Positions 6,191-63,000 of a stretch of 64,000 bases of DNA are shown one piece after another (positions within the stretch are counted from its first letter, which is position 1; every line of letters starts with the position of its first letter). The notes beneath the pieces were generated by a model. That model was not told where the DNA came from. It did not search any database and worked only from the letters and a program-made list of their open reading frames with translations. Origin of the DNA: Laetmonice hystrix (lineage: Eukaryota); assembly GCA_965235115.1 (NCBI GenBank), contig OZ249436.1, positions 11,098,001-11,162,000 on the forward strand, given 5' to 3'. Made by a program: the position numbers and the translations under genes.

Positions 6191-8816
6191 TGGACTTAAT
6201 GAAGATCTATAGCTCATTTGACTAGGATCTGTATCAGAAGTGCATTGCGAGGCCCTTTTTTCTATGTCCATGCGCACCGTAATGTAACATGACTAATTTA
6301 CATCCAAGGGCAAGTCTCCAAAGGGCACTTTCACTGACACACTAATTTACACTTGCTGCCAGGTGCAAACCTTCCATAACCCCTGCCCTGAACCATTCTG
6401 CCAGCCCGACCTCCCTCAAGGCTGAGTGGAAATACCAGCTGCCAGCCTTCCTGCTCCATCCTGGCGGATCCAACTCTCACGATCATGGTACACGCCTTAC
6501 CGTGCGGCCTAATGATACAAACCTACCAGCCCACTCATGTGGCATGTCATGTATTAATACTGGACAAATTAACATGGATTATACCATCTGAGACTCATAC
6601 ATCATACCAATCCCATCAGAACTCAGACAATCCACAGACAGAGTGTTGCCGTACTTGTAAAAAGGTGCGACTCAGTGCACTGCCATGCCAATATCTGATA
6701 GGTTCAACGTGTCAGGCTTCAGAGTCTGACACCCTTTAGAATTCCGTATTCTACATAGCGACAACAGTATAATGTTTGGGAATTGGCTTTTAGAAGCCAT
6801 TCCCCAAATCCCTCACTTTCATCAAAGGCTGACTGCGGAGAGATGTAAGGTCCCTTGAGGTCTTTAATGGGCAGTCCTCTATCCACTGAACACTGCGGTC
6901 ATTTATAACATGCTGTGATGGTGATGAATGCTGCAACCACTAATTGTCATCTGCCAGACACCCTAAATCTATAAATGAGCCAAGTCTTTAATGAGCATTC
7001 CCTTAATGAGCCATGGAGATAATGAGTAGGGTTGAGACAACAGCAGGCCTGTACACCAACAGAGCTGGTAGACACACATAGGTAATCAACTTACGATTTC
7101 CTTCAATTTTCTCAGATATTTTTTTAACCAGAGAGAATACGATCAACAGTCGGAAACGAACCCGATGGTCTTCCCATTACTGAAGACTATTTTTAGCCAT
7201 ATTAGTACTAGCGGAATTATTTATCCATGTCATACGTTACGGTCAAGTCGTACCTAAACCAAATAAATGAACAGGGGCAAAAACTGATAATAGTTTGGCA
7301 TATCGTTATCTCCGTGTGCAGCTGATACTCCAGGACAATGATTTCTAAAAGTAATCATTATTGGTTTAAGTCATACGGATACTACCTGCTGTTAATCCAT
7401 CTTCTGTCTCCACTAGCTATCTTTTTTTCAGTTTGTAAGTACATTTGTACATTGTACATTTATACAACAGGACTTGGTATTACCGGTACAGTAATTCCTC
7501 TGGAACTTGAATGATGCGGGCCTATTGACCTACAGTGAATTCTTTTGCAGGGCATTCCCGCAGCTACAGCCCTGTTTATGTGAGTTTGTTAATATTCACA
7601 TGTGAATATAAGCTGTTGAAATGTCCTTAATCTTACGGTAACATTTTATCATGCAGAAATGAATGCAACCAGTTTCTGAAGAAACCATCCATCATCATCA
7701 TGGCTGCCATCGTCATCATCTCACATCTTCACGAATCATCATCAAAAAACCGGCAATCCGAGAAAAATATCAACTCATGATATCTCTTTATTGCCATGGC
7801 ACAAGTGACTACATATTTTTTTTAATCCAGGAAACACCAGGAAATCGATGAGCGAGAGGTTTGGAAGAGACAGGGCCACTGATTTCCTGCCACATTACCT
7901 TGCCCTGCCGTGGTGGATTGATCTTCCTCGCTTTATGAAATAATTGGATCAATAAATGAAACTAGAGGTAGGCTAATAACCGTGAGACGGACATGAATGT
8001 AGCCAACCATTTTAATGAGTTCTATAAACACATTCCTCACATTATCCACGCCCACTTAAACCTATAGCAATTGGCAGGCGAGGTAAGTTTTTACCTAAAT
8101 ACACTCTCAACCCCAGACTTTAGCCCCTGAACGAGATCGCTTTTCATTGAAAAGAGAGAAGTTATGATGCCATGAAATCCTTCTGTGGAGATTAACCCAG
8201 TCAAGCTTACACATGAATGAGGGTAAGATGTCTTACCCTAGATTTGCATCATCTCCCTGCAAAAGCTTGACCTTTTTCTGACACTAATTCCCCTGAGGCC
8301 TGTCAATAATCATAGTCTTACAATGAGCCTTGGTCTCTAGAGTAATAAATCACTGTCACCTAGACACGTCCCCCAAACTCTACCCTACCATCATTACTCG
8401 GACTGGTCCTTACTTATCACCTTCTCCCCTGAATTACCCAACACTACTCTAGTTATCTGTCCCAGGATGGCAACCTTCTATTACGGCGGCCAATCTATTC
8501 AGACCTTTCAAATAACTACACAAAACACAATCCTTCGGTCTAGACGGTACATAACAATAGTTTTAAAATGTTTCTGTTGCCTGGCCTCTGCATCAACATA
8601 CCCAACTGACCTTTCAGACACGTAACGCGGCTCTGTTTACATATAATACGGTGATAACGTTGATAGGGAGACGCACAGGCCAACGAAACGTATTGACACT
8701 GGAACAATGTCCCCAGAATCACCTACCACGGCGAATTGTTCCTGGAAAAGGAGTCTCTGAATGCCTGCAAAATACCTCCTGCCATTACAAGAGTATAGAA
8801 CCAATGATTGCCATTT

Positions 8817-27000: not shown

Positions 27001-30000
27001 GAGAAGACAAGTGGTAATCACAGGTAGCTGAGTAATGAACACTATTGTCATCCCAGCCATCACCCTTCTCATATTCATATCGGAACTATCGTCACAGAGA
27101 TTCTCCGGCTACTAAACACCACAACCATGGGCGTCACCCAGTTGCAAAAACGTTCCCAACGGCTGACATGTTTATAGAAGAGCGACACATTCAAAAGGTT
27201 TCCACTTTTTTAAATAAATTAGGCACAAACCTAAGAAAATAATTTGAAGAAGCTCAGAAATGCGAGAGGTCCGTATATAGCAATCGGTGATTTATCTATT
27301 CAATTTGAGCAGAGCAGAGCTGAATACTGTTAATGCTTTCCCTAGCCTGTAGTATATTCTATATTTAATTATGTCAAAAAATTACTACTACTACTAGTAA
27401 CACTGCAGTATAAGTTGTGTGCATATTAGTCGATTATTTGTCTATCTCTAGAGTAATACGAGTCGTGTATGGGCCCTGGCCTGTTCTGCGTATTTGTTTA
27501 CTGTATGAGGGTTCAGCAATGAGGGATTTGTGTCGCTTTGTGGGCGGTAAACATATTACGTATTATATGCGCGGCTCACACAAAGGGCGTGAAAACCGCA
27601 TATGAAAGGTATCAATTTGTCAGAAACCTGGCGAATGTAAGACAAAACTGTGAGATGGTAAATCTGTGTGAAATATTATATGGAGAGCTACACCGCGAAC
27701 ATCGAGACCGTGTTTCGGTGGGTCATAGCCGACTTCAGTCCCTGGATTCTACATGAGTGAGATTCCCCGTGTAATAGAAATGTCAGCAACTCGTGTCAAC
27801 CACAAGGGCATCAGGACTGGTTGTGAATGATCCTTGATGTTTTATGCTGCAGGCTGCTCTGCTAAGAAAAGTATGATGGCTCAAGTAGAAGTCATTTGTT
27901 GGCATAACTTGGTAAAGTATATAAAAATACATAATTGAATGATTATAACAAAACTATCACATGTGTATTTTCTGCGAGGTTGGCGGGATGAAAAAATAAT
28001 TATTTATGCTAAATGAAACCAAGGGAGGATCCAGGATTTAGAGACTCTTAAACATGAGTTAATGAGAGTCTATTGACCTTTAGTAGCACGGCAGTCTGAC
28101 TGGTTGAGCCAGGGCGGACAAATATAAGTCTATTGGTCGCGGGTAAAAGGTATGTTTATAAGGACATACTGTATGGAGTTGGCATCTTGTGGTAAGGTAG
28201 TTGATTGATTTAGTGATACCCGTCATAGACGATGGTCGGACAGGGCCATACTGCCGTCCGCAGACGATGGTCGGAGAGGGCCATACTGCCGTCCGTAGAC
28301 GATGGTCGGAGAGGGCCATACTGCCGTCCGCAGACGATGGTCGGAGAGGGCCATACTGCCGTCCGCAGACGATGGTCGGAGAGGGCCATACTGCCGTCCG
28401 TAGACGATGGTCGGAGAGGGCCATACTGCCGTCCGCAGACGATGGTCGGAGAGGGCCATACTGCCGTCCGTAGACGATGGTCGGAGAGGGCCATACTGCC
28501 GTCCGTAGACGATGGTCGGAGAGGGCCATACTGCCGTCCGTAGACGATGGTCGGAGAGGGCCATACTGTCGTCCGTAGACGATGGTCGGGGAGGGCCATA
28601 CTGCCGTCCGTAGACGATGGTCGGAGAGGGCCATACTGCCGTCCGTAGATGATGGTCGGAGAGGGCCATACTGCCGTCCGTAGACGATGGTCGGAGAGGG
28701 CCATACTGCCGTCCGTAGACGATGGTCGGAGAGGGCCATACTGCCGTCCGTAGACGATGGTCGGAGAGGGCCATACTGCCGTCCGTAGACGATGGTCGGA
28801 GAGGGCCATACTGTCGTCCGTAGACGATGGTCGGAGAGACCCATACTGCCGTCCGTAGACGATGGTCGGAGAGGGCCATACTGCCGTCCGTAGACGATGG
28901 TCGGAGAGGGCCATACTGCCGTCCGTAGACGATGATCGGAGAGGGCCATACTGTCGTCCGTAGACGATGGTCGGAGAGGGCCATACTGCCGTCCATAGAC
29001 GATGGTCGGAGAGGGCCATACTGTCGTCCGTAGACGATGGTCGGAGAGACCCATACTGCCGTCCGTAGACGATGGTCGGAGAGGGCCATACTGCCGTCCG
29101 TAGACGATGGTCGGAGAGGGCCATACTGCCGTCCGTAGACGATGGTCGGAGAGGGCCATACTGCCGTCCGTAGACGATGGTCGGAGAGGGCCATACTGCC
29201 GTCCGTAGACGATGGTCGGGGAGGGTCATACTGCCGTCCGTGTACCCCTGGTGTGATGAAGCCACTTGTCTGTGGTGTACGGTATCTAACGTTAACAACC
29301 ATATTGACTCGGATCATTTGTCACCTGTCTCTGACTGGGGTGTTTTTTTGTAATCCGGCCGTGGTGCCGTGCCGGGGCTGCTATGCTGGAGTTGGTGGTC
29401 AGCATCGAGTAGGTGTGGGTACGGTAATGATGCCATTAATTAGTATGCACGGGGGAGGATTGCCCGCAATGAAGCATGATGGCACAACACGTGTTTGCTT
29501 ACTAATGAAGATGGCATAGGGAATAATTGCCGGTTGGGGTTCAGCTGCGGTGAGCTCTAATGTAAAGCAGACAATCTGGTCTTACTGCTAATTCCCGCTG
29601 ATTATATTTGAGTGTCGCTTACTCTTGTATTATCAGCTATCATAAAGATGTCACCGTGTCTTACCATGTAACTTGTCGAGTGTAACTTGTCAGATGTAAC
29701 TCGTCAAGAGAATCCCAGCGGCAGGGTCTTTGATTCTCCTCGGTGTCTATGGTAGATGTCATGCCTGAGAGTGAGGCTGAAAACAGATTGCAAGCCACAG
29801 GTGTGGCCACTTAGCTCAGGGATTGCATATATTTGGATATTTAATACCTTCAGCCTTTGGCCTGAATGAAGAGCAGATCCCTTCCTGCATGGAGAGATTA
29901 ATGTCGATGGAGGACTTCACAGTCACCGTGTGGTGCTTAATCATGCACGGATGGCAATGCCTGGATCTTCGAATGATCTATACAAAATGACATGAATAAC

Positions 30001-51000: not shown

Positions 51001-54000
51001 TACTCTTGCAGAGTCCAGTGGGGTTAAGTCTCCTATAAGATCCTTTGAGCTAGCCGTAATGAGAAGCAACAAAGGTCAAGGCTAAAGAGTTCATGTACAG
51101 TTTGCGATTTCCTGAGATGAGTGTCTGGTGTCAAAGATCAAAGGTAGCAGGTAGACTAAGCCCATCCCTGAGGTCCCTGTAATCCATGAATGCTGTGACC
51201 TGTGGTAGACCAAGCCCATCTCTGAGGTCCCTGTAATCCATGAATGCTGTGACCTGTGGTAGACCAAGCACATCTCTGAGGTCCCTGTAATCCATGAATG
51301 CTGTGACCTGTGGTAGACCAAGCACATCTCTGAGGTCCCTGTAATCCATGAATGCTGTGACCTGTGGTAGACTAAGCACATCTCTGAGGTCCCTGTAATC
51401 CATGAATGCTGTGACCTGTGGTAGACTACGCACATCTCTGAGGTCCCTGTAATCCATGAATGCTGTGACCTGTGGTAGACTAAGCACATTTCTGAGGTCC
51501 CTGTAATCCATGAATGCTGTGACCTGTGGTAGACTAAGCACATCTCTGAGGTCCCTGTAATCCATGAATGCTGTGACCTGTGGTAGACTACGCACATCTC
51601 TGAGGTCCCTGTAATCCATGAATGCTGTGACCTGTGGTAGACTACGCACATCTCTGAGGTCCCTGTAATCCATGAATGCTGTGACCTGTGGTAGACTAAG
51701 CACATCTCTGAGGTCCCTGTAATCCATGAATCCTGTGACCTGTGGTAGACTAAGCACATCTCTGAGGTCCCTGTAATCCATGAATCCTGTGACCTGTGGT
51801 AGACTAAGCACATCTCTGAGGTCCCTGTAATCCATGAATGCTGTGACCTGTGGTAGACTACGCACATCTCTGAGGTCCCTGTAATCCATGAATGCTGTGA
51901 CCTGTGGTAGACTAAGCACATCTCTGAGGTCCCTGTAATCCATGAATCCTGTGACCTGTGGTAGACTAAGCACATCTCTGAGGTCCCTGTAATCCATGAA
52001 TGCTGTGACCTGTGGTAGACTAAGCACATCTCTGAGGTCCCTGTAATCCATGAATGATGTGACCTGTCGGCCCTGCCCCCTGGCCAGACTTTCCTAGTCA
52101 GCCGTACTGTTCTGCAGGTGTTGATTCTTTTTGTTTCATCTTTCAGTTCTGATGATGAGGACACTCAAGGAGGCGGCTACGGTGGGGAAAGTGACCCTAA
52201 TGACAAGGAAAGGTTGGCAAGGTAAGATCTTCTCATAATACCGTATCTTATGTTTGACAACGGGGTATTGGGGTAATCCGCCAAAAGTGTTTTCTCAAAT
52301 GGTCTACCAAATAACCTTTTCTCCTTGCTGAAGTCTTGGTCACCCATCTTGCTTCGAGTACTAGTATTATTATCACACTGTCAATGTGAGATTTGAACGT
52401 CTGCCTCGCCATGAAGATAAAATTGACACTTACTAATGTGTGTGATAAAGGTTTACCGGTAGTCTTCGAATATTATATGGGAATGCTTTAAATGTAAAGG
52501 ATTGCAGTTTAGGATAAGGAGGTTATCTTTTTCTAACATTGCATTAAAATGGACTCAGTATTAAGAAAAAAAAATAGTTATTTCTGACTTGGAGTAAAAC
52601 AAGCTATTGGTTTTTAATGGAAATCTTTGTTTAGTAATGAGACCTAAAAACTAGGAGCACCTTGGTAAAGGTCACCAAAGAACAAACTCCGGTGACCTAC
52701 CAAAACAGAAATATTTCTGCCGGCAAAAAGGCCTGCAAACATGTGAAGTGAGAGTTGTTAGAAAGCCATTCACCAGCCAGAACACAATGGGTTGTTTAAA
52801 GTTATGGAAGCTGACACGGATCTGTTTACAAGGACATCCTTGTGCAGGGGTTTCCCCAGACTGTGCATTTCTCGAGATAAACCATGCATTATTGTTAACC
52901 TGTATTACCATATTGTGATAAGTATTGTACTTATGTGCTTTAAGACAATCCATGTATTTATGTTTAAGAAGAAAAGACTGAAAAATCAACAAAAGTAAAG
53001 AAATTCATCGGGGATTCTCAAAATAATGCATTCGCCCATGCAGTGATGCTTAACCGTTTTGAAGATATATGTTGGGTATAATATTTGGAACTATACTCAA
53101 TAAGGAATGACCTAATAAATCACTTCTGGGTGTAATGAAATTTGCACATTGATGGGTCGTTGTTAAGGTAGTGTCTACGAGTAAAGAGTAGCTCTTCAAC
53201 GTTACCCTGGATGTTTGCACATGTTTCCTGTTCCCCACCTTTGTAGTACATAACTCTGCTAGTTTTGCATCACAATGGCTATTGCCACCATGTCGACAGT
53301 CCCAAAAATTCAACTTGCGAGCATGCCTGAATTGTTGTAAGTTGCACTTGCAGTTGTTTTGTGGGTAACAGTGGTCTCTCTCTTTTGCTCTGAAGCACGA
53401 AGCTATACCAACAACATATTATGTACTGTTGATGTAACCCCCCAAAGTACAGTCATTACTGTCTGCAATAGAGGAAGGATGAAAAAATGGTAACAAAATG
53501 ATATTATTGAAATGTGTGCCGTATTGCAACTGAAAACGCCAGATATGCAGAGATTTGGGTGTCGGTGACAATGAGGGCAATTTATGAGAATTAGATGCTA
53601 CATGGCATTGTCTCCAGTTGTGTCCAAAGGCTGACAGGACTTCGATACAGTTGTCTATCTCCCATATCATCAAAAAGATGATGAAAACCCAACCTGCAGT
53701 TCTCAAATGTAAGGATGTACCGGAATTGTACAACACGTTTCATGTACGTCTTTGTACATGCATTCTGGTTGTTGTCACTTGCAGTATCTTCACTGCTCAC
53801 TACTCTGCGCATATAAATGCCGCAATCAGTAGAATTTTAGCTGGATGAATTTACAGGGAATAGCTGCCCTTACATGGTCGGTCCATATCTAAAACACATA
53901 CCAGCACTTTATTGTGATCTAAACATACCATTTCAAGAAGCTTAAAATTTGGAGCAGTCGTCAAGGCTGCACAACATACGTACCCCCGGTATCCTATCTC

Positions 54001-57000
54001 TACGCCCCTATAGGCTGGTTAACAAATGCTTAACCGTAACTTTGCCCTTTACATTTCATAAATCAAGACAATGGAAATTGTGAGTATGACTTCAGTACCT
54101 TCCTCTAGCAAGCTAAGGAAATGCCCTGTGAGGAACAAATTAAAACCGTTTAGAGAAAGCCTGTACATTAACCGGACAGCATGACATTCTTTCCGACCTG
54201 GGTTTCAGTTTTCAGACATCCTCGGCTCTTGTCAGTATTTTTAAGCAACACTGTCATTCATCCTGGAAAACCCCCCATTGCGATTCCTATTTTAGTTTGG
54301 TGACCTTCCAATCTTTCTTCATCAAGTAAAAGAGGCGAGGAATTTAAAAGGAAGAACTCAAGATAGCATGATTTCAATAATATCATTTTGTGATTATTTT
54401 TTTAACTCTGTCAGTTACCACTTGGTGTTCGGGTTTGTTCACCACGCTGGAAAAAAGTTCTTTTTTCTTTGTTCAAGTTTGGCTGAAGATTACTTTCTCA
54501 TGTATAATATACCTGTCTCTGGAACGAGTTCTATATTGACACGTAATTGTGATCGATATTCGCATATTTTGTAGACTGCTCTCGGGTGTGTGTCCTTGGT
54601 GTGTTGGATGTGTGTTTGTGTGCTTTTTATTATTTTTTAAGGTGGGGGTGCTTGAAACCTCGGTATCAGAAATTCTCAGTTTTTCTACTTAGGCTATGAC
54701 AGTCTTTGGTTTACTGAGAATAAGTAAATGGGTGTTTTTATTCTGTAATATTGAACCCTGGCGTCTTAATATTTACGTCGGAAACGGACAATGAATCTGA
54801 GATTATCAACCGAAGGTTTTAGTTGTTTCTGTGTAACATCCTTGATAAATGATACCTTAAATATGTTTTCCAAAAGCAGACCAAAAACAGAAAAAAAACC
54901 TGCCAGTCTGGTCTAAATGTTTTTGCGTGGTCACCATAGCATGTATGAACGGCTTGGTGGGGTCAATTATCTCTGTCTCTGCTCTCAACAACTAATGTTT
55001 CCTTCTGCCTGTGGACTGTGTGTTGTCGAGTTTTCCGAACTTTTTCACAACCCTGGTGACAAGGATTTAAAATGAGACGAACGGAAGAATTCCTGTCTTT
55101 AGCCAGAATTAGAAGAATCTGATTCAGAAGGTGTGTTTCTTAATGAAGGTCTGCACCATCAAATTCTAGGAACAAACTAAATGAAGAGTCTAACTTTTGT
55201 TTTTTTTAAGGGCTAGATGCCTTTACGTTTTTCGATAAGAAAGCCGTATTTGTAAAGCTTGGACCTTCAATGGAAAATCAGTCGTTTAAAAATAAGAAAC
55301 TATTAAATGGGTAGATTTTTAAAATTTTGTTACTTGATGCAGGAATCTTTCATCGACTCTACCAGGAAAATATGTAGGAAAATTCCATTTGGTAGTGGCA
55401 ATAAGTACATATAGGATAGATGAAGCTTCAGAATACTGGGTACTGGTACTAGAGTAAATGTTGTTCGTGTCATTATACCGACCATATACCAGGGCCGTTT
55501 ACAAAGTGAACCAGAACATTTTACCGTGCGTGGCTTGACTCTGAGTTAAATGTGATGCCGTGTCGTCCAAGTCACCCTCTAAGGTAAGATAGACAACTGG
55601 AATGTCATCTCCCCCAGTTGAAGATTGCTCACTGGAACCATCACGTTCACACCAAGCGGTCACACACTATCCTGACACCTGTCATCTTTACAATCACTAA
55701 ATCCTCAAATAAAACATTTCAAATCAAATCAATATTATTATAGGAAGGGTTTTAGTCTAAGATGTATGCACTAGTAAGGAGTCCAAACGGTTGCAGTGAG
55801 AAGAAACTGCAGCACTTGCAGGGACCCACTACTGGCACCTCTTATTGCAAATATGCCTTAGCAATGGTAGACCCCTCTCAGAGTGGTATAAGCCTCCCCT
55901 GACGAGCAGCCTTATCCCTGCTCGGGTGTGATGTGGGGACGGTAACGTCCCTACCATGCACCCCACTACCCACAGCGTCCTGGAGTGATGGACAGGTCCT
56001 GGAGGACGAACAGGAGGAGCCTCCCGCTCCGGGAGCCACAGTGGGGACCATGTCGCAAAGCCCGTTTATGTATACCTCTCTGACGGGCGTGCGTATCCAT
56101 GGCTAAGACAAATTAGCAAGAGGAGTTACCTGTAGTGAGACCTACAAACCTGGGCTCCTTGCCGGTGCATACACCTGTAGGCGACCTTCAATTTAATAAC
56201 TACAGTGATTTATCGTCACCGGTGACATGTTTTGACCAGTGATGGTGGTGATGAGCAGTTTCGGTTATATATGGACGGATGTTTTATGTGTTCTGTGTGA
56301 CCGACATGGTGATCATTCCCAGGAGTCGTCCCCCCCACCGGCCAGCTGGACGCTATAGGGGACGACCGGACGGTCATAGTGACCTGAAGGCTGTCTCCTC
56401 GTCCAGTGTCGCAGGTCTCTGTCGTGATTTGTCATTGCTGTTCACTATGACGTGTGTGTTTCCATTGTAGAGAGAGCCACTGTGAAATTGAGCGGCGCCG
56501 CCGCAATAAAATGACGGCGTACATAAACGAGCTTTGCGACATGGTCCCCACATGCTCAACTCTCGCCCGAAAACCCGACAAGCTCACTATCCTTCGTATG
56601 GCCGTTTCACATATGAAAAACATGAGAGGTAACGCCATACTGTTGTACTCTAGTGGCGCCATTTTGAACCTGGGTCCACTCTACCATATTACACCCCCTG
56701 CCATCCTGCTGCTTGTTTCCCCCCGTTCTCTTTCTTTCTTCCTTTTTTTTAATTTTTTATATTTTTTTTCTCCAGTGGGACATTTTTTCTAACCCTTGGA
56801 CAGCACTAGAGCCTCCATCGGTCAGTCACTGAGCCAGTAGCAGCCTTAAACGCATGATGCTAGCCGTCGCCTTTCGTTGCCAAGCCTGTTTGCCATTAGC
56901 CATTCAAATGGTCACCTGGTTGTAATGTCGGTGTGAGGATGGAAACAAACATGTTTCATTCAGTGCAGTGCCACTCTGTCAGAACTATGTAGAATTATGC

Positions 57001-60000
57001 TCTGTTATTTTCTCAGAAGTACATCAATAGCTTCCTGGAAACCAAAACGTCTATGTCGAGGTCATTTGGAATCTCCATTTCTTTGCCCAGACATTGCCTT
57101 GAATCTTGATCACAAATACAAACAAAACTGAATACGTTACTCTTCTGTCCTGTTGCCTTGGATGCATTTTGATCGTATTTTTCAAAAGACATGCCTTTTC
57201 TTCTTTTATATTTTTATATTTGACTCTAAAATGGATTCTTGGACGAAACACACGTCGATGTATCCCATATAAACCAGGTGGCCATTTAAGATGGAGGCCA
57301 TTAATTTCGGTGCATCTAATACCTTCTCTCCTGCAGCGGTCTGTTCCACTTTGTATCATCAGTGAAACCACTACCCTCATGGCCCCGTCCTTCCTCCCAC
57401 AAACTATCGCGACCACACGTCTCGGGAGACGAGAGCGAGAGAGAGAGAGAGAGCAGGAGTACCGACCCAGTTGCTGACGCAGTTCTGCGACCTGTTTTCC
57501 TCTTGTAGGGAGAGCCATTGTGAGATTGAAAGGCGTAGACGTAGCAAGATGGCCACTTATGTTAATGAGTTGTGTGACATGGTCCCAGCATGTAGCACGC
57601 TCGCTCGAAAACCAGATAAACTCACGATTCTTCGTCTGGCCAACGCCCATATGAAAGTACTTCAAGGTAATGTAATACGATGTAACGTAACCATGTTTTG
57701 ACTGAATGATCATCGTCATTGATTGCCGCACCGTGTGCCGTCGCAACACGTGATTGGCTGTTTGGTGTTTGGCTCCAGAGCCTCACTTTCAGCTACTGTG
57801 GTTATGACTCTTTCAACTGACTGTCCACGTTGCACCGTCACTGTCTTGACTCTCGCTCTACAAAACTATGGGCAGTGTGCTCAAGAGTTGCCAACGCTTC
57901 CATGCCCACCTGCTTCCACAATATCCGCATTTTACATATTCATTTCTTTATTGAAAGAAAATAAAGTTTGCTTTCCTAGAAAGATGGACCCAGTCAGTTG
58001 GCAGCTCTATGAACTTTCTCAGCTCTCTGCACAGTTCCAACAGCTATTGGGTGCACGCACTCTGGTCTCTGCCCCCTCCCACTCCACCCGAACTCTCAAT
58101 GTGTTTGTGTCACAACACAGTCTTCAAAACACTACTGCCAGCAACTTTACCGAATCCCAGGACGGAAAATTTGCAGTGCCATGTTGGCAGTGGAGAGCCC
58201 TCAAAGGTTTAAAAAGGTCACTGTGCCTCCTATATGCTTTACGTCCCCTGAAGGATTGCCGCCATGCAACGCAAGCTACAATGTATATGTACTATTGATA
58301 GCATAACATTTACGTCGATTCTAAAATATGTATGTCAGATGGAAAAATATAGAGCTCAAAAATAATATAGATGTTTTCCACAAAACAGTTGAGTGCCCAG
58401 CAGTTTAAATAAAGACCGATGAATTGGTTGAAGTCTGAACCCCAACTTTAAAACAGATTTTCAGAGGCCGAAATTGGTTCAGTAAAGTACAATAGGCAGG
58501 TGAATGTATTGATAAGAGAGTATTTCATTGAATCCTTTCCAAGAGGCAGAGTTATAATGCTGTAGCATGTAGATGACTGGTCGGTTGACCGTATCCCCGT
58601 TTAGAAATGTCGTTGTAACTGGATGATGGTGAGAACATATTGTAACCGAAGGACATTCGTGTGAGATTCGTACACCAGGTTAACCTATCAGAAGTTCTCG
58701 CCAATTCTCACGAAATAATATTCAAATGAAGTGCAGATTTCCAAAGCTCATGATCCTCGTAAAGTACAGGGGGCGGGGAATTATGTGGTCACGAAGTTAT
58801 TATATTAAACTAATTAGTGTTGGTCGTAAAATATTTTATGTGATTTTGATCAGCGAGTAGAAGACAATGCTGAGCTATGACTCATCACTTGGGAATGGCT
58901 GAGGGGAGTGATCCTGGTTTCTGATGGTATACGCTATCCTGAGGATAATTTTTATCTTATGTCTCTAGCACATCCTATGGAGGTTGTTTCAGTGTTCATA
59001 TATACTCTCGAACCTTTCTAAATCAGTATAGAAGAAGATAAACCTTGCAATACCTGGGACATCGTGCTTAGTCAACGCTGACATAAAAACAACTCATTAG
59101 GAATTCTGAAGAAATATTAAAGAAACAGTTGGGAAAGCCGTGACGAGTTTTTTTTTAGGAATTATCATCCTGAGTACGGAACCCATAAATGTATTCCTGT
59201 TTGATGTAATGTTTATTTATGTACTTCCCAACTTATTGATATTTGGTCCATCCCCGAGTTTGTAAGAACAGGAAGGACAACGAGATGTAGCAATAATTTA
59301 TGATGCGTCCGTTTTATATGCTGGAATACAGACATGACAGTGGAAGTTACAGGAGAGTTTGAAAAGTAAATATGTCAACCCTTGACCTACCAATGTAAAT
59401 TAGAAACCAGTTTCGTTCTGGCTTCATATTCTGATGTGAATTGGCTCGAGAACTTGACCTTGTTCAGTGTTCTATACTGCTGGGAAAATGAGCTTGGGAG
59501 ATATTTTAGCGAGTGCCAGACATTGTGTAAGATTTGCGAGGGCGTTGTTTCGGAGTTGTGACCATCCGTAATGCTGTCTGTATGAGAAGTGGTGTTGACA
59601 GACCGAGGAGGAACGAATGACGGAATGACAAAGATTCAACACTAACACGTCCCCAGTGAACCTGACCTCCTCAATCCCCGCGTCCGCCATAGCTTTAGTC
59701 GTCCTGTAGTAGACCTCCACTGGTAGCGGTTCCTACTAAACTAGTTGTCGTCGCTTGCCGTCGGCTCCTGCAGCTTGCCACGGTTCCCAGTTGTCGCACC
59801 CAGTAGCAGCACGGCGCTCACCAATGTCTTCACATATCATTGTTACGTAGATATTTCTTTCAGTGTCCGTCCTTGATTTGTTTCCAGGTCATTTGGATGT
59901 TGATGATGCATTGCTGCACCCTGTAAAGGCAGTAGTAGACCGTCTTCCCTGGATCTCCTCTATTTTTTTCCTGCTGTTGCCATTCTGCTTTGTCAGTACT

Positions 60001-63000
60001 TGTAGTTTGTGGGGACTTTCTGGGTGCATTGAATTAACACCTGCCTCGATTTCACTGCCATTGACGCCAGAATAAACAAACATTAACGTGGTGTAAGGAG
60101 ATCCGTCTATACTCCACTGGGACAGGGTTGAACCAAGGATGCTGTTCCATCCCTACCCTCCCTCCCCCACCATCCACAGTATCCCGTTTCTATGAAAAGG
60201 TTCCATTGATGATACAGAATGCAACAAGCACGGTGCCAAAATGTAACGTTACTTCCAAATGACGCGGTTTACCATTCTATGTCTTAACTTCTGTGCATGC
60301 ATTTTGTTTGGTTTCTGATTCACAGCCTGTTTTAATCCAGAATCTGGAACTTTTTCACATCCTACATTTTTATCATCTCCCCCCCCCCTTCTTTTCGCAA
60401 GAATAAGGCATGCATCCATAGTTGTGATTTTACCGCGTCAATCATTTTCGAAAAATTGCCAAACTATATATTTTTTAAGCTTTTTCCCCCTATCTTTTCA
60501 ACATTTGAACGGAAGTGTTTGTCTTAACATGGAAAAAAGGTTTTGTCGCCAACTGTGAAGGAGATAAGCTCTTCTTATCACTTAAATCTTAGTCAGCTAT
60601 TACTTATTTTTACTAAAAAGAATTAATTTTGTTCCACATCGAAATGCGCCGCTTTTAAGTTTTGTATCATTGTCTAGCAAAACTGGAAAGTATGCTGGAA
60701 AGCAACAAAGCGAAACTAAAGATTCTTTTGAAAGATTCTTTTTTTTACCGATTTCTGAAATCAAAACTGTTAAACTCAGCGTCCGATTGTTGAAAAACAA
60801 AAGAGTCTCAGCAAACAATTCCATTTCTGTTGTTTCTGATTAATTCTGAAGATTGAAATCTCTACCTGTTCCATGGTGAAACTAATATAGATTGAGAATC
60901 AGAACCGTCTTTGTGTGAGGGGAAGAAAAGAAAAAGTTGACAAATCATCCACATCACCGCAACTGTATCACGGCTTATTGTGTTTGATAGCCCTGGAAGC
61001 ATGTTATATTGTCCTGGCGATGGCTATTTGGATGGAGCAACTTGAAGCCGTGTTACCATAACGTGTGTCTTTGTTTGCTAATTGCCCCCATTGGATACTT
61101 AGGAACAGGAAACACCAGTACAGATGGTTCATACAAGCCTTCCTTCCTCACTGATCAAGAGCTAAAACACCTCATATTAGAGGTAAGTGCGTCAAAGTTT
61201 GAGGGGAGATATCGAACATGTCAGATGACACTGATTAATTCTATTATTGTTGACACTTTTGTTTTAAACTTCACATCAGAATAAAGCCGCGCATACACTT
61301 TGTTAAATGAAGTTATTCTGAAGACAAAACAAATCTTTAAACATACCAGACAGGTGCAAAAATTGGGCGACTTTTACTTTGAGAACAGGAATGTTGTTTT
61401 TTGAGTAGTCTGTTCCGTTGAGTTACCCATACTCGCCTGGCTTCTTGTAAAATATCAAATGTGACTTCCTTTCAAATAAATAATTGAGCTATATTTTCAG
61501 CCTATGCGTTTTCATTGCCGTTTATATATACTTTACAAAAGTATCTGTAGGATAGTGACAAGTGGCTAGGTGAAGCTAAGGTGGCTTTTAGAACCTTTTA
61601 GGTAAAATAAAAAATCCGTTGGACCAGAATGTTACAAGTGGAGAAATTCATGAGCGAGACTTGTCGAGTGGATGGTGTGCGTCCATATGAAGTACGCACA
61701 CAGGTATCGAGTAATGACAAGATCAGGGTAACACGATCTGAATGCACTGCTCACCGCCAGATGGCAGCACCGGTATTACTCAAACGTCCAGCGGTCTATG
61801 GCATGGGCACCGTAACTCTTGCTTGGCGAGGATTTAAAGAAATAAATTTGAAAACAAAAGAAAAGATTTTTCATACATTTGGCACCCAAATCCTACAAAA
61901 CCAGTTGGCATTATGAAGAGTCAATTAGGTGCCGTATTTTATATTGAGAACTTTAGTACATGTATTTGGTGAACCTGACGATCAGCTTAATGCTGTCTGA
62001 GATTAAACCCATGGGGGAAGGGGTCACAGTGTGTGACACCCAGTGGGTCCCAATGATTGACAGATGTTGTGACCGGTTGCACCTATTTTTGTTTGCAGGC
62101 TGCGGACGGTTTCCTGTTCGTAATCCAGTGTGACACTGGGCGTGTTATTTATGTGTCGGACTCGGTAACACCAGTCCTCAACCAGACACAGGTGGGTAAT
62201 ACAATCAGAGAAACTTCTCAGACGGCTTTATATCTTCGTATGTACAGCAAACAAAGAATGATAACCAATGCTATCTTATTTATTAATTAATATGACAGGA
62301 AATGTGTGAATATTGGAGGGCAAGGTGCTCAGTGACGTGAATGTTGCCTTTTCTCACTGATTAATTACTGATTAATGTGAGGTGTATAGGTTTGGATGAA
62401 AAAGATATTGATCTTTGAGAATTGTTATAGTCATCCTCAGACCTGCATCAGACAGATCCATACGTAACGTGTACAGACAGACATCTAAGAAAAGGACTTT
62501 GAAGGTCAACGTGTGTCGTTTAACTGTTGAGAAACTTGTTTTTCAGTCTGACTGGTTTGGCAACAGCCTTTATGAGCTAGTCCATCCGGATGATATAGAG
62601 AAATTGAGAGAACAGCTCTCTACCTCTGAGTCCCAGAACACGGGTCGGATCCTCGATCTGAAGAGTGAGTGGTCAACCCGTCGGCAACCTGAGCCGAGTA
62701 AAACGGGTTTACAACTATACCTATCTTATTTAAAGTTGTCCACATAGTGATATTTTGTATTCATTGCTTCTCTATGGGAGGGATATGATTTTGATGTTGT
62801 TCTCGTACTGTGTTGTACAAAAACGGGAGGGACGTCCCACTACATGTCAAGAACGATGAACGCACCAAAATTCCACTTGGGGTCGGGGGGAATTAAACAC
62901 TTCCCGTTGTTTGTGAAGATTTGAGCGTGTAAATTGGAATTATATTATTGATTTTTCTCATGCGTTTTTTTTTACCGAGTCAATTTGTTTTGTTGTTGTA

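Follow-up and report, generated by a model that had tools for sequence, protein, structure and literature searches.

Competing RNA pairings between a docking site and selector sequences control mutually exclusive splicing in Drosophila Dscam1 exon 6, 14-3-3 xi and srp and in human ATE1 R1-R5 (PMC4691838, PMC7797038, PMC8791459). Ivanov and Pervouchine proposed a model for the origin of such systems, where tandem duplication of an exon together with one stem arm yields two competing selectors (PMC6071210). Pairing between exon and intron is also familiar from ADAR editing, in which coding sites are usually defined by an intronic editing-site complementary sequence (ECS), as at the GRIA2 Q/R and R/G sites and the Gabra3 I/M site (PMC1920255, PMC3479170). 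Mutually exclusive basic helix-loop-helix (bHLH) exons are known from TCF3 (E2A), where the choice between E12 and E47 was reported to depend on hnRNPH1 and PTBP1 (PMC6795145). Here we examined a 64,000-nt stretch of the Laetmonice hystrix genome (GenBank assembly GCA_965235115.1, contig OZ249436.1, positions 11,098,001 to 11,162,000; referred to below as the window, in whose numbering positions are given). It carries an ARNT homologue with two tandem bHLH exons, 4a and 4b, and an intronic 32-nt element at 56041..56072 that is an inverted copy of the interior of exon 4a. This element belongs to known kinds of exon-intron helices, those affecting splicing or editing. The reading we place first, tentatively and short of an even chance, is that the duplex acts one-way on exon 4a, tuning its use, and that the element is a lineage-restricted inverted micro-duplication probably kept by selection; a neutral micro-duplication ranks second, an ADAR substrate third, and a switch working in both directions comes last as a very unlikely explanation.

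The locus is like the docking/selector systems in having an intronic element upstream of tandem homologous exons that is able to pair with each variant. In those systems, however, both partners are intronic, the pairings are comparable in strength and conserved with the exon cluster, and pairing usually activates the adjacent exon, whereas here the partner is an exon interior, one of the two pairings is much the stronger, the exon pair is older than the element, and the pairing with 4b stays at the level of paralogy. As in the model of Ivanov and Pervouchine, one arm faces two homologous partners that come from exon duplication, but the order is reversed, with an ancient exon duplication and a docking arm that arrived later as an inverted copy of one exon. 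The likeness to ADAR ECSs lies in complementarity between an intron and a coding exon, a helix of ~30 bp, an internal A:C mismatch, arms conserved including synonymous sites, and ADAR genes being present. Unlike most of them the element is upstream, the mismatched A has a 5′ G, and the helix is nearly perfect where known site-selective substrates are usually interrupted, editing at this locus being only a candidate. In TCF3, too, the DNA-binding and dimerisation domain of a bHLH transcription factor is encoded by two alternative exons in tandem, but the gene belongs to a different family and lineage and its exon choice is reported not to rest on an exon-intron helix.

An antisense copy of the exon 4a interior

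Going by its sequence, the gene is a predicted ARNT homologue with two tandem 158-nt bHLH exons. Both translate as ARNT-type bHLH domains, their named relatives being ARNT/tango homologues at 80-86% identity, and ARNT PAS-A sequence was found in open reading frames (ORFs) downstream of them. Exon 4a (56471..56628, + strand, as for all features below) has a translation ending in ...MRG, and the paralogous exon 4b (57509..57666), ending in ...LQG, is intact with canonical ag/gt borders. The two have equal length (158 nt), the same phase and 70% nucleotide identity, and exons of the 4a type and 4b type differ in the basic region and helix 2. A first-pass annotation of this DNA, made from the sequence alone, had put the exons at 159 nt; we corrected this to 158 nt each, the length of 4a being set by an RNA junction, as a spliced contig from a related organism, organism C (X8), begins at 56471 and runs from 56628 directly into 61103, the gap having GT..AG borders.

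The intronic antisense arm (56041..56072) is the reverse complement of an exonic arm inside exon 4a (56520..56551) that encodes part of bHLH helix 1. We reproduced the complementarity claimed in the first-pass annotation, 31/32 with 447 nt between the arms, and found every third codon position in the exonic arm to be matched, as it had also stated. The sole mismatch sets C56062 against the A in the second position of a Glu codon, GAG (56529-56531). Enclosed in the 447-nt loop (56073..56519) are the 4a polypyrimidine tract, the acceptor (ag at 56469-70), whose position within the loop was confirmed, and the first 49 nt of exon 4a. When the reverse complement of 55960-56140 was aligned to both exons, similarity stopped abruptly at both borders, in line with the earlier statement that nothing clear continues beyond the 32 nt, and this lack of similarity outside the element rules out that the entire exon was once copied in inverted form and has since decayed.

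A search of the window allowing ≤3 mismatches returned the two arms as the only matches, compared with 0.00 matches in 100 dinucleotide-preserving shuffles, and a scan of all 64 kb for inverted pairs of ≥24 nt within 3 kb found this pair alone, direct repeats (minisatellites) being plentiful. Only a small part of the window is coding sequence, and the exonic arm falls within it. In the 627-Mb assembly the 161 nt surrounding the element occur once, ruling out a repeat family or transposon fragment, and a Logan contig built independently from the same organism (X1) covers both arms without difference, making an assembly artefact unlikely. A metagenome scan with either arm gave no match, nor did an Rfam scan of 53500-58500 at E ≤ 1.

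These features bear on the possibility that the element is a neutral inverted micro-duplication, in which a templated insertion or template switch in repair would have copied 32 nt of exon 4a to a site 450 nt away, recently and with no selected function. Sharp borders without flanking similarity fit a short templated insertion. That the 64 kb contain no second inverted pair of this kind, and that this one copies the coding sequence of an alternative exon, argues the other way, as does the expectation that a 31-bp helix in a conserved DNA-binding exon would be unlikely to remain without consequence where ADARs exist.

Pairing with exon 4a and exon 4b

The first-pass annotation had proposed that the single intronic arm chooses between the two exons, pairing either with 4a or with the homologous segment of 4b (57558..57589), a weaker potential partner. 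Its count of 28/32 for the 4b segment was reproduced, as 22 Watson-Crick pairs, six G-U pairs and four mismatches with an 11-bp perfect core. The energies of the two pairings, a comparison it had proposed, are not of comparable stability: RNAduplex gave -56.7/-58.6 kcal/mol for element-4a and -33.9/-35.7 kcal/mol for element-4b, leaving 4a stronger by ~23 kcal/mol. The 4a duplex is present in both the minimum free energy and the centroid folds of 56000-56640 (z = -6.8). Its loop is 447 nt as opposed to 1485 nt for the 4b pairing, and the 4a site is not only closer to the element but also transcribed before 4b.

A two-way docking/selector switch, in which one intronic arm masks 4a or 4b and the coding exons themselves act as selectors, draws some support from the 4b segment being the element's second-best partner among 2215 windows of 52223-61200 (-35.7 vs a background of -13.3 +/- 4.8), with its 11-bp perfect core. 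In addition, a synonymous difference in exon 4b shared by organisms B and D, T57563A, slightly improves the 4b pairing by putting an A-U pair in place of a U-U mismatch, and the origin of competing structures from a duplicated arm has been proposed as a general route (PMC6071210). Position 57563 is also A in the 4b exons of two distant loci (L004 and L007), and T in a third (L006) as in the window. As a control, we paired the element with the homologous bHLH segment of seven foreign loci, either 4a- or 4b-type, and obtained 26-29/32 (Watson-Crick plus G-U), for instance 25+4 with the 4b exon of L004 and 25+3 with the 4a exon of L002. The bHLH exons of unrelated species thus pair equally well, and since 28/32 with the window's own 4b falls within this range, the 4b complementarity reflects shared coding sequence and gives no signal beyond paralogy.

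Further evidence argues against a switch of this kind. The ~23 kcal/mol gap favours 4a, as do the shorter loop and earlier transcription, and the exon pair occurs elsewhere without the element. Since the element postdates the exon duplication, the route of Ivanov and Pervouchine does not apply. Moreover, 158 nt is not a multiple of 3, and inclusion of both exons, or of neither, would shift the reading frame; exclusivity in coding mRNA therefore needs no RNA structure. Among the intronic islands conserved with organism B, no other docking/selector-like pairing stood out besides that of the element-bearing island, 56014-56137, with exon 4a. With foreign exons pairing equally well, a far stronger 4a duplex, an exon pair older than the element and exclusivity enforced by the frame, we do not retain the proposal of a single arm choosing 4a or 4b, and consider it very improbable. 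What stands of the broader claim that the element works as RNA structure is that a stable exon 4a-intron duplex is predicted, that its arms are apparently unchanged in a relative, and that a role in pre-mRNA processing is plausible; the two-way choice between 4a and 4b does not stand.

A related idea is that the locus shows a docking/selector switch that is only now coming into being, with a templated inverted exon copy supplying the docking arm and the alternative exons serving as selectors, 4a being masked strongly and 4b weakly. Under this idea helicases, RNA-binding proteins or editing of the helix by ADAR could switch which DNA-binding domain ARNT receives. We regard it as improbable.

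Age of the exon pair and conservation of the element

Exons of the 4a and 4b types are widespread among species, and the tandem arrangement is not restricted to the window. Two NCBI assemblies (L004 and L005) and L006, all distant invertebrate genomes, have a 4a-type exon, then a 4b-type exon, then exon 5, with 870-1276 nt between 4a and 4b (L004:5092-6120; L005:5091-6120; L006:4686-6120). Orthologous bHLH exons are 76-81% identical to those of the window, compared with 70% between the window's 4a and 4b, and as orthologues are more alike than the window's paralogues the exon duplication predates these species. Other genes have a single type, 4a only in L002 and L003 (L002:7125-7283) and 4b only in L007-L009 and L020 (L007:5962-6120). 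The two bHLH versions therefore appear, judging from these gene sequences, to be alternative exons or the sole version of the gene depending on lineage. In L020 (506-1708) the genomic sequence itself has exon 3 fused to a 4b-type exon, the gene being compact, with short introns and no 4a. A different arrangement is seen in L010 (8067-8410), which has two 4a-like bHLH exons 29 nt apart (8067-8225 and 8255-8410), the second being more diverged (…CDIVPMCS…MAGSHMKTFYG); this pair is an independent, more recent duplication, and its exons are too close for splicing to each other. Protein searches with the exon ORFs reached distant species only, and their introns do not align to the window.

For conservation of the intron we relied on two close relatives, organism B (X4) and organism C (X8), compared by aligned contigs and listed differences. 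A 4065-nt contig of organism B is collinear with the window and aligns to it in separate pieces, at 55845-55927, at 56014-56137 (17 differences), from 56438 over exon 4a and its surroundings (6 differences), at 57483-57859 with 4b inside, and at 57977-58068; the segments between them are nearly equal in length with identity <80%. Our reading assumes that the listed differences found in X4 only run in position order up to 57339 and cover those more than ~30 nt from the piece ends. Among the differences listed, none falls at 56044-56078 and seven fall at 56079-56101, while exon 4a has two, at 56558 and 56606, both of them synonymous third positions outside the arm. Among the same listed differences, at least 29/32 nucleotides of the element and the whole exonic arm are unchanged, the A:C mismatch included. 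Organism C also aligns over the element, through two low-depth intronic contigs (from 56012 onwards, and 56053-56190).

Divergence from organism B in the aligned islands is 11-17%, at which a neutral 32-mer would be expected to carry ~4-5 differences (P about 0.01), although alignable islands are found through exact matches and the significance is therefore nearer 0.01-0.1 than 0.001. The apparently unchanged arms amid diverged flanking intron suggest selection but do not prove it. A neutral origin has to accommodate an element that predates the split from organism B, given islands 11-17% diverged and other intron at <80% identity, and yet shows no listed difference in at least 29/32 nt. On the other hand, synonymous divergence from organism B in exon 4a is low (2/158 nt listed), and if the local neutral rate were ~5% and not 15% an unchanged 32-mer would be unsurprising; the element is also absent from all distant species with the same exon pair, and the RNA of organism C gives no sign that 4a use is affected. 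On balance we consider a neutral micro-duplication unlikely, though it is the closest in probability to tuning of exon 4a.

Exon use and a possible effect on exon 4a

If the duplex does tune exon 4a, the element would have arisen as an inverted micro-duplication of the 4a interior and would pair with the exon in the pre-mRNA once 4a is transcribed. The 31-bp helix would cover the centre of the exon (nucleotides 50-81 of 4a) and keep the 4a acceptor in the 447-nt loop. It may in this way slow or weaken exon definition of 4a, which as the proximal exon would otherwise be the default winner, so that the 4a:4b ratio would be tuned, and opening or stabilising the helix could shift that ratio wherever 4b is used. 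Complementarity to 4b would be a by-product of the paralogy of 4a and 4b, and exclusivity would come from the 158-nt length. Besides the stability and uniqueness of the duplex and the apparent conservation of the arms, we counted in favour of this explanation that the element adjoins a long-conserved tandem alternative exon pair.

Several points weigh against it, and the bias towards conserved islands noted above is one of them. The conservation in organism B was read from listed differences and not from base-level sequences, with 56041-56043 outside the assessed part. No change at all is listed in the arms, and hence none that is compensatory. The first-pass annotation had looked to orthologous introns for conservation with compensatory changes; the first half of this was borne out, as the element is apparently unchanged in organism B, and the second was not, with no covariation and an element absent from distant species. 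An antisense copy of the gene's own exon is absent in L004, L005 and L006, in which both exons are present, and in L010 and L011, and an exon pair without an antisense copy in distant species means that the element is much younger than the pair. The helix, at a predicted ~-57 kcal/mol, is also far stronger than a tunable stem would need.

The remaining points against tuning come from RNA. Our view of RNA is that of organism C (X8), whose spliced contigs behave like RNA; no run recorded as RNA covered the stretch. In these contigs 4a is joined to exon 5 at a depth of about 60 and the depth on 4b is zero. Splicing of 4a to exon 5 at good depth means that the helix does not block 4a in organism C. 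RNA support for 4b use was found in no species with the tandem pair. The ORFs P0050, P0080 and P0117, which resemble exon 3 joined to 4b, were considered as instances of exon 3-4b splicing and ruled out, since L020 shows a genomic fusion of exon 3 with a 4b-type exon without 4a.

A candidate editing substrate

The same helix could instead be an ADAR substrate, with the element acting as an ECS and the exon 4a-intron duplex directing A-to-I recoding of 4a while splicing is normal. The main candidate is the A that faces C56062, whose editing would convert the GAG Glu codon in bHLH helix 1 to GIG, read as Gly; other candidates fall in Tyr, Ile, Asn, Asp, Met and Thr codons. The geometry is the classic one, with an intronic sequence complementary to the exon around the target A and a helix (31/32) longer than ~20 bp. 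The single mismatch places an exon A opposite an intron C, apparently also in organism B, and A:C is the mismatch configuration of highest editing efficiency (bioRxiv 10.1101/605972). The 3′ G of this A is favourable as well, but its 5′ neighbour is a G, the least favoured context (10.1101/605972). As a matter of chance, ~9-14% of single substitutions in the element would yield an exon-A:C mismatch.

The genome has at least two ADAR-like loci, paralogous to each other, at C21:15856814-15878401 and C5:28038678-28045845, each with an A_deamin domain that is preceded on the same strand by two dsRBD motifs. A_deamin matches reach up to 221 bits, and there are probably two further A_deamin/dsrm loci, on C18 and on C11, where one match contains in-frame stops. 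Exact conservation of the helix, far stronger than folding requires, fits the behaviour of an ECS, and efficient splicing of 4a to exon 5 in organism C is compatible with editing. Set against this, the Glu is invariant in 152/152 relatives retrieved and Gly is never genomically encoded there, and known ECSs are mostly found in the downstream intron (PMC3479170), whereas this element is upstream. The organism C RNA contig (depth about 60) has no listed A-to-G in 56520-56551 at consensus level, where minor variants are hidden, and editing was therefore not above ~50% in that sample. Editing also leaves the coincidence with an alternative exon pair unexplained. We consider an ADAR substrate possible but doubtful, less probable than a neutral duplication and well ahead of either form of switch.

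Other features of the gene and its surroundings

Upstream of the bHLH exons, exon 3 (52147..52221) ends with the first part of an R codon that is completed by the next exon, and its 3′ end agrees with a loose end of the organism C RNA. Before 56471 a second organism C contig of the same run (X8) reads the end of exon 3 and then 12 nt that are exactly those of window positions 54068-54079. Given this exact match and the flanking ag and gtgagt, 54068..54079 (ACAATGGAAATT) is a 12-nt microexon that separates exon 3 from exon 4a, a further correction to the first-pass annotation; the residues it adds, QWKL, come immediately ahead of the basic region. An alternative exon is present at the analogous position of vertebrate ARNT. 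Downstream, exon 5 (61103..61182) provides the common acceptor for 4a and 4b, its junction with 4a being present in the RNA of organism C. A 16-nt inverted repeat (15/16; 56906-56921 and 57272-57287) with arms 350 nt apart lies in the intron that separates 4a from 4b.

The surroundings are rich in tandem repeats. A minisatellite array of 54-nt units at 51217-52067 ends ~80 nt before ARNT exon 3, a second array with 35-nt units lies at 28224-29225, and repetitive ORFs at 48.9-49.8 kb point to a third.

Implications

AHR, HIF and SIM-type bHLH-PAS factors all share ARNT as their partner, and we found nothing in the literature on alternative bHLH exons in this gene. Should the element turn out to be neutral, it would caution that homology by itself supplies complementarity to a paralogous exon. 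If instead a switch is coming into being here and other inverted exon copies in this genome act alike, this would be a general route to RNA-structure control of exon pairs. As the helix is absent in distant species and present in near ones, the locus offers a dated example, one that would show regulatory helices arising by inverted micro-duplication of an exon. With an either/or choice of the exon for DNA binding and dimerisation, a single gene would yield two ARNT proteins, and a conserved helix touching one of the two exons would be an experimental handle on that choice, or on the recoding of an invariant bHLH residue.

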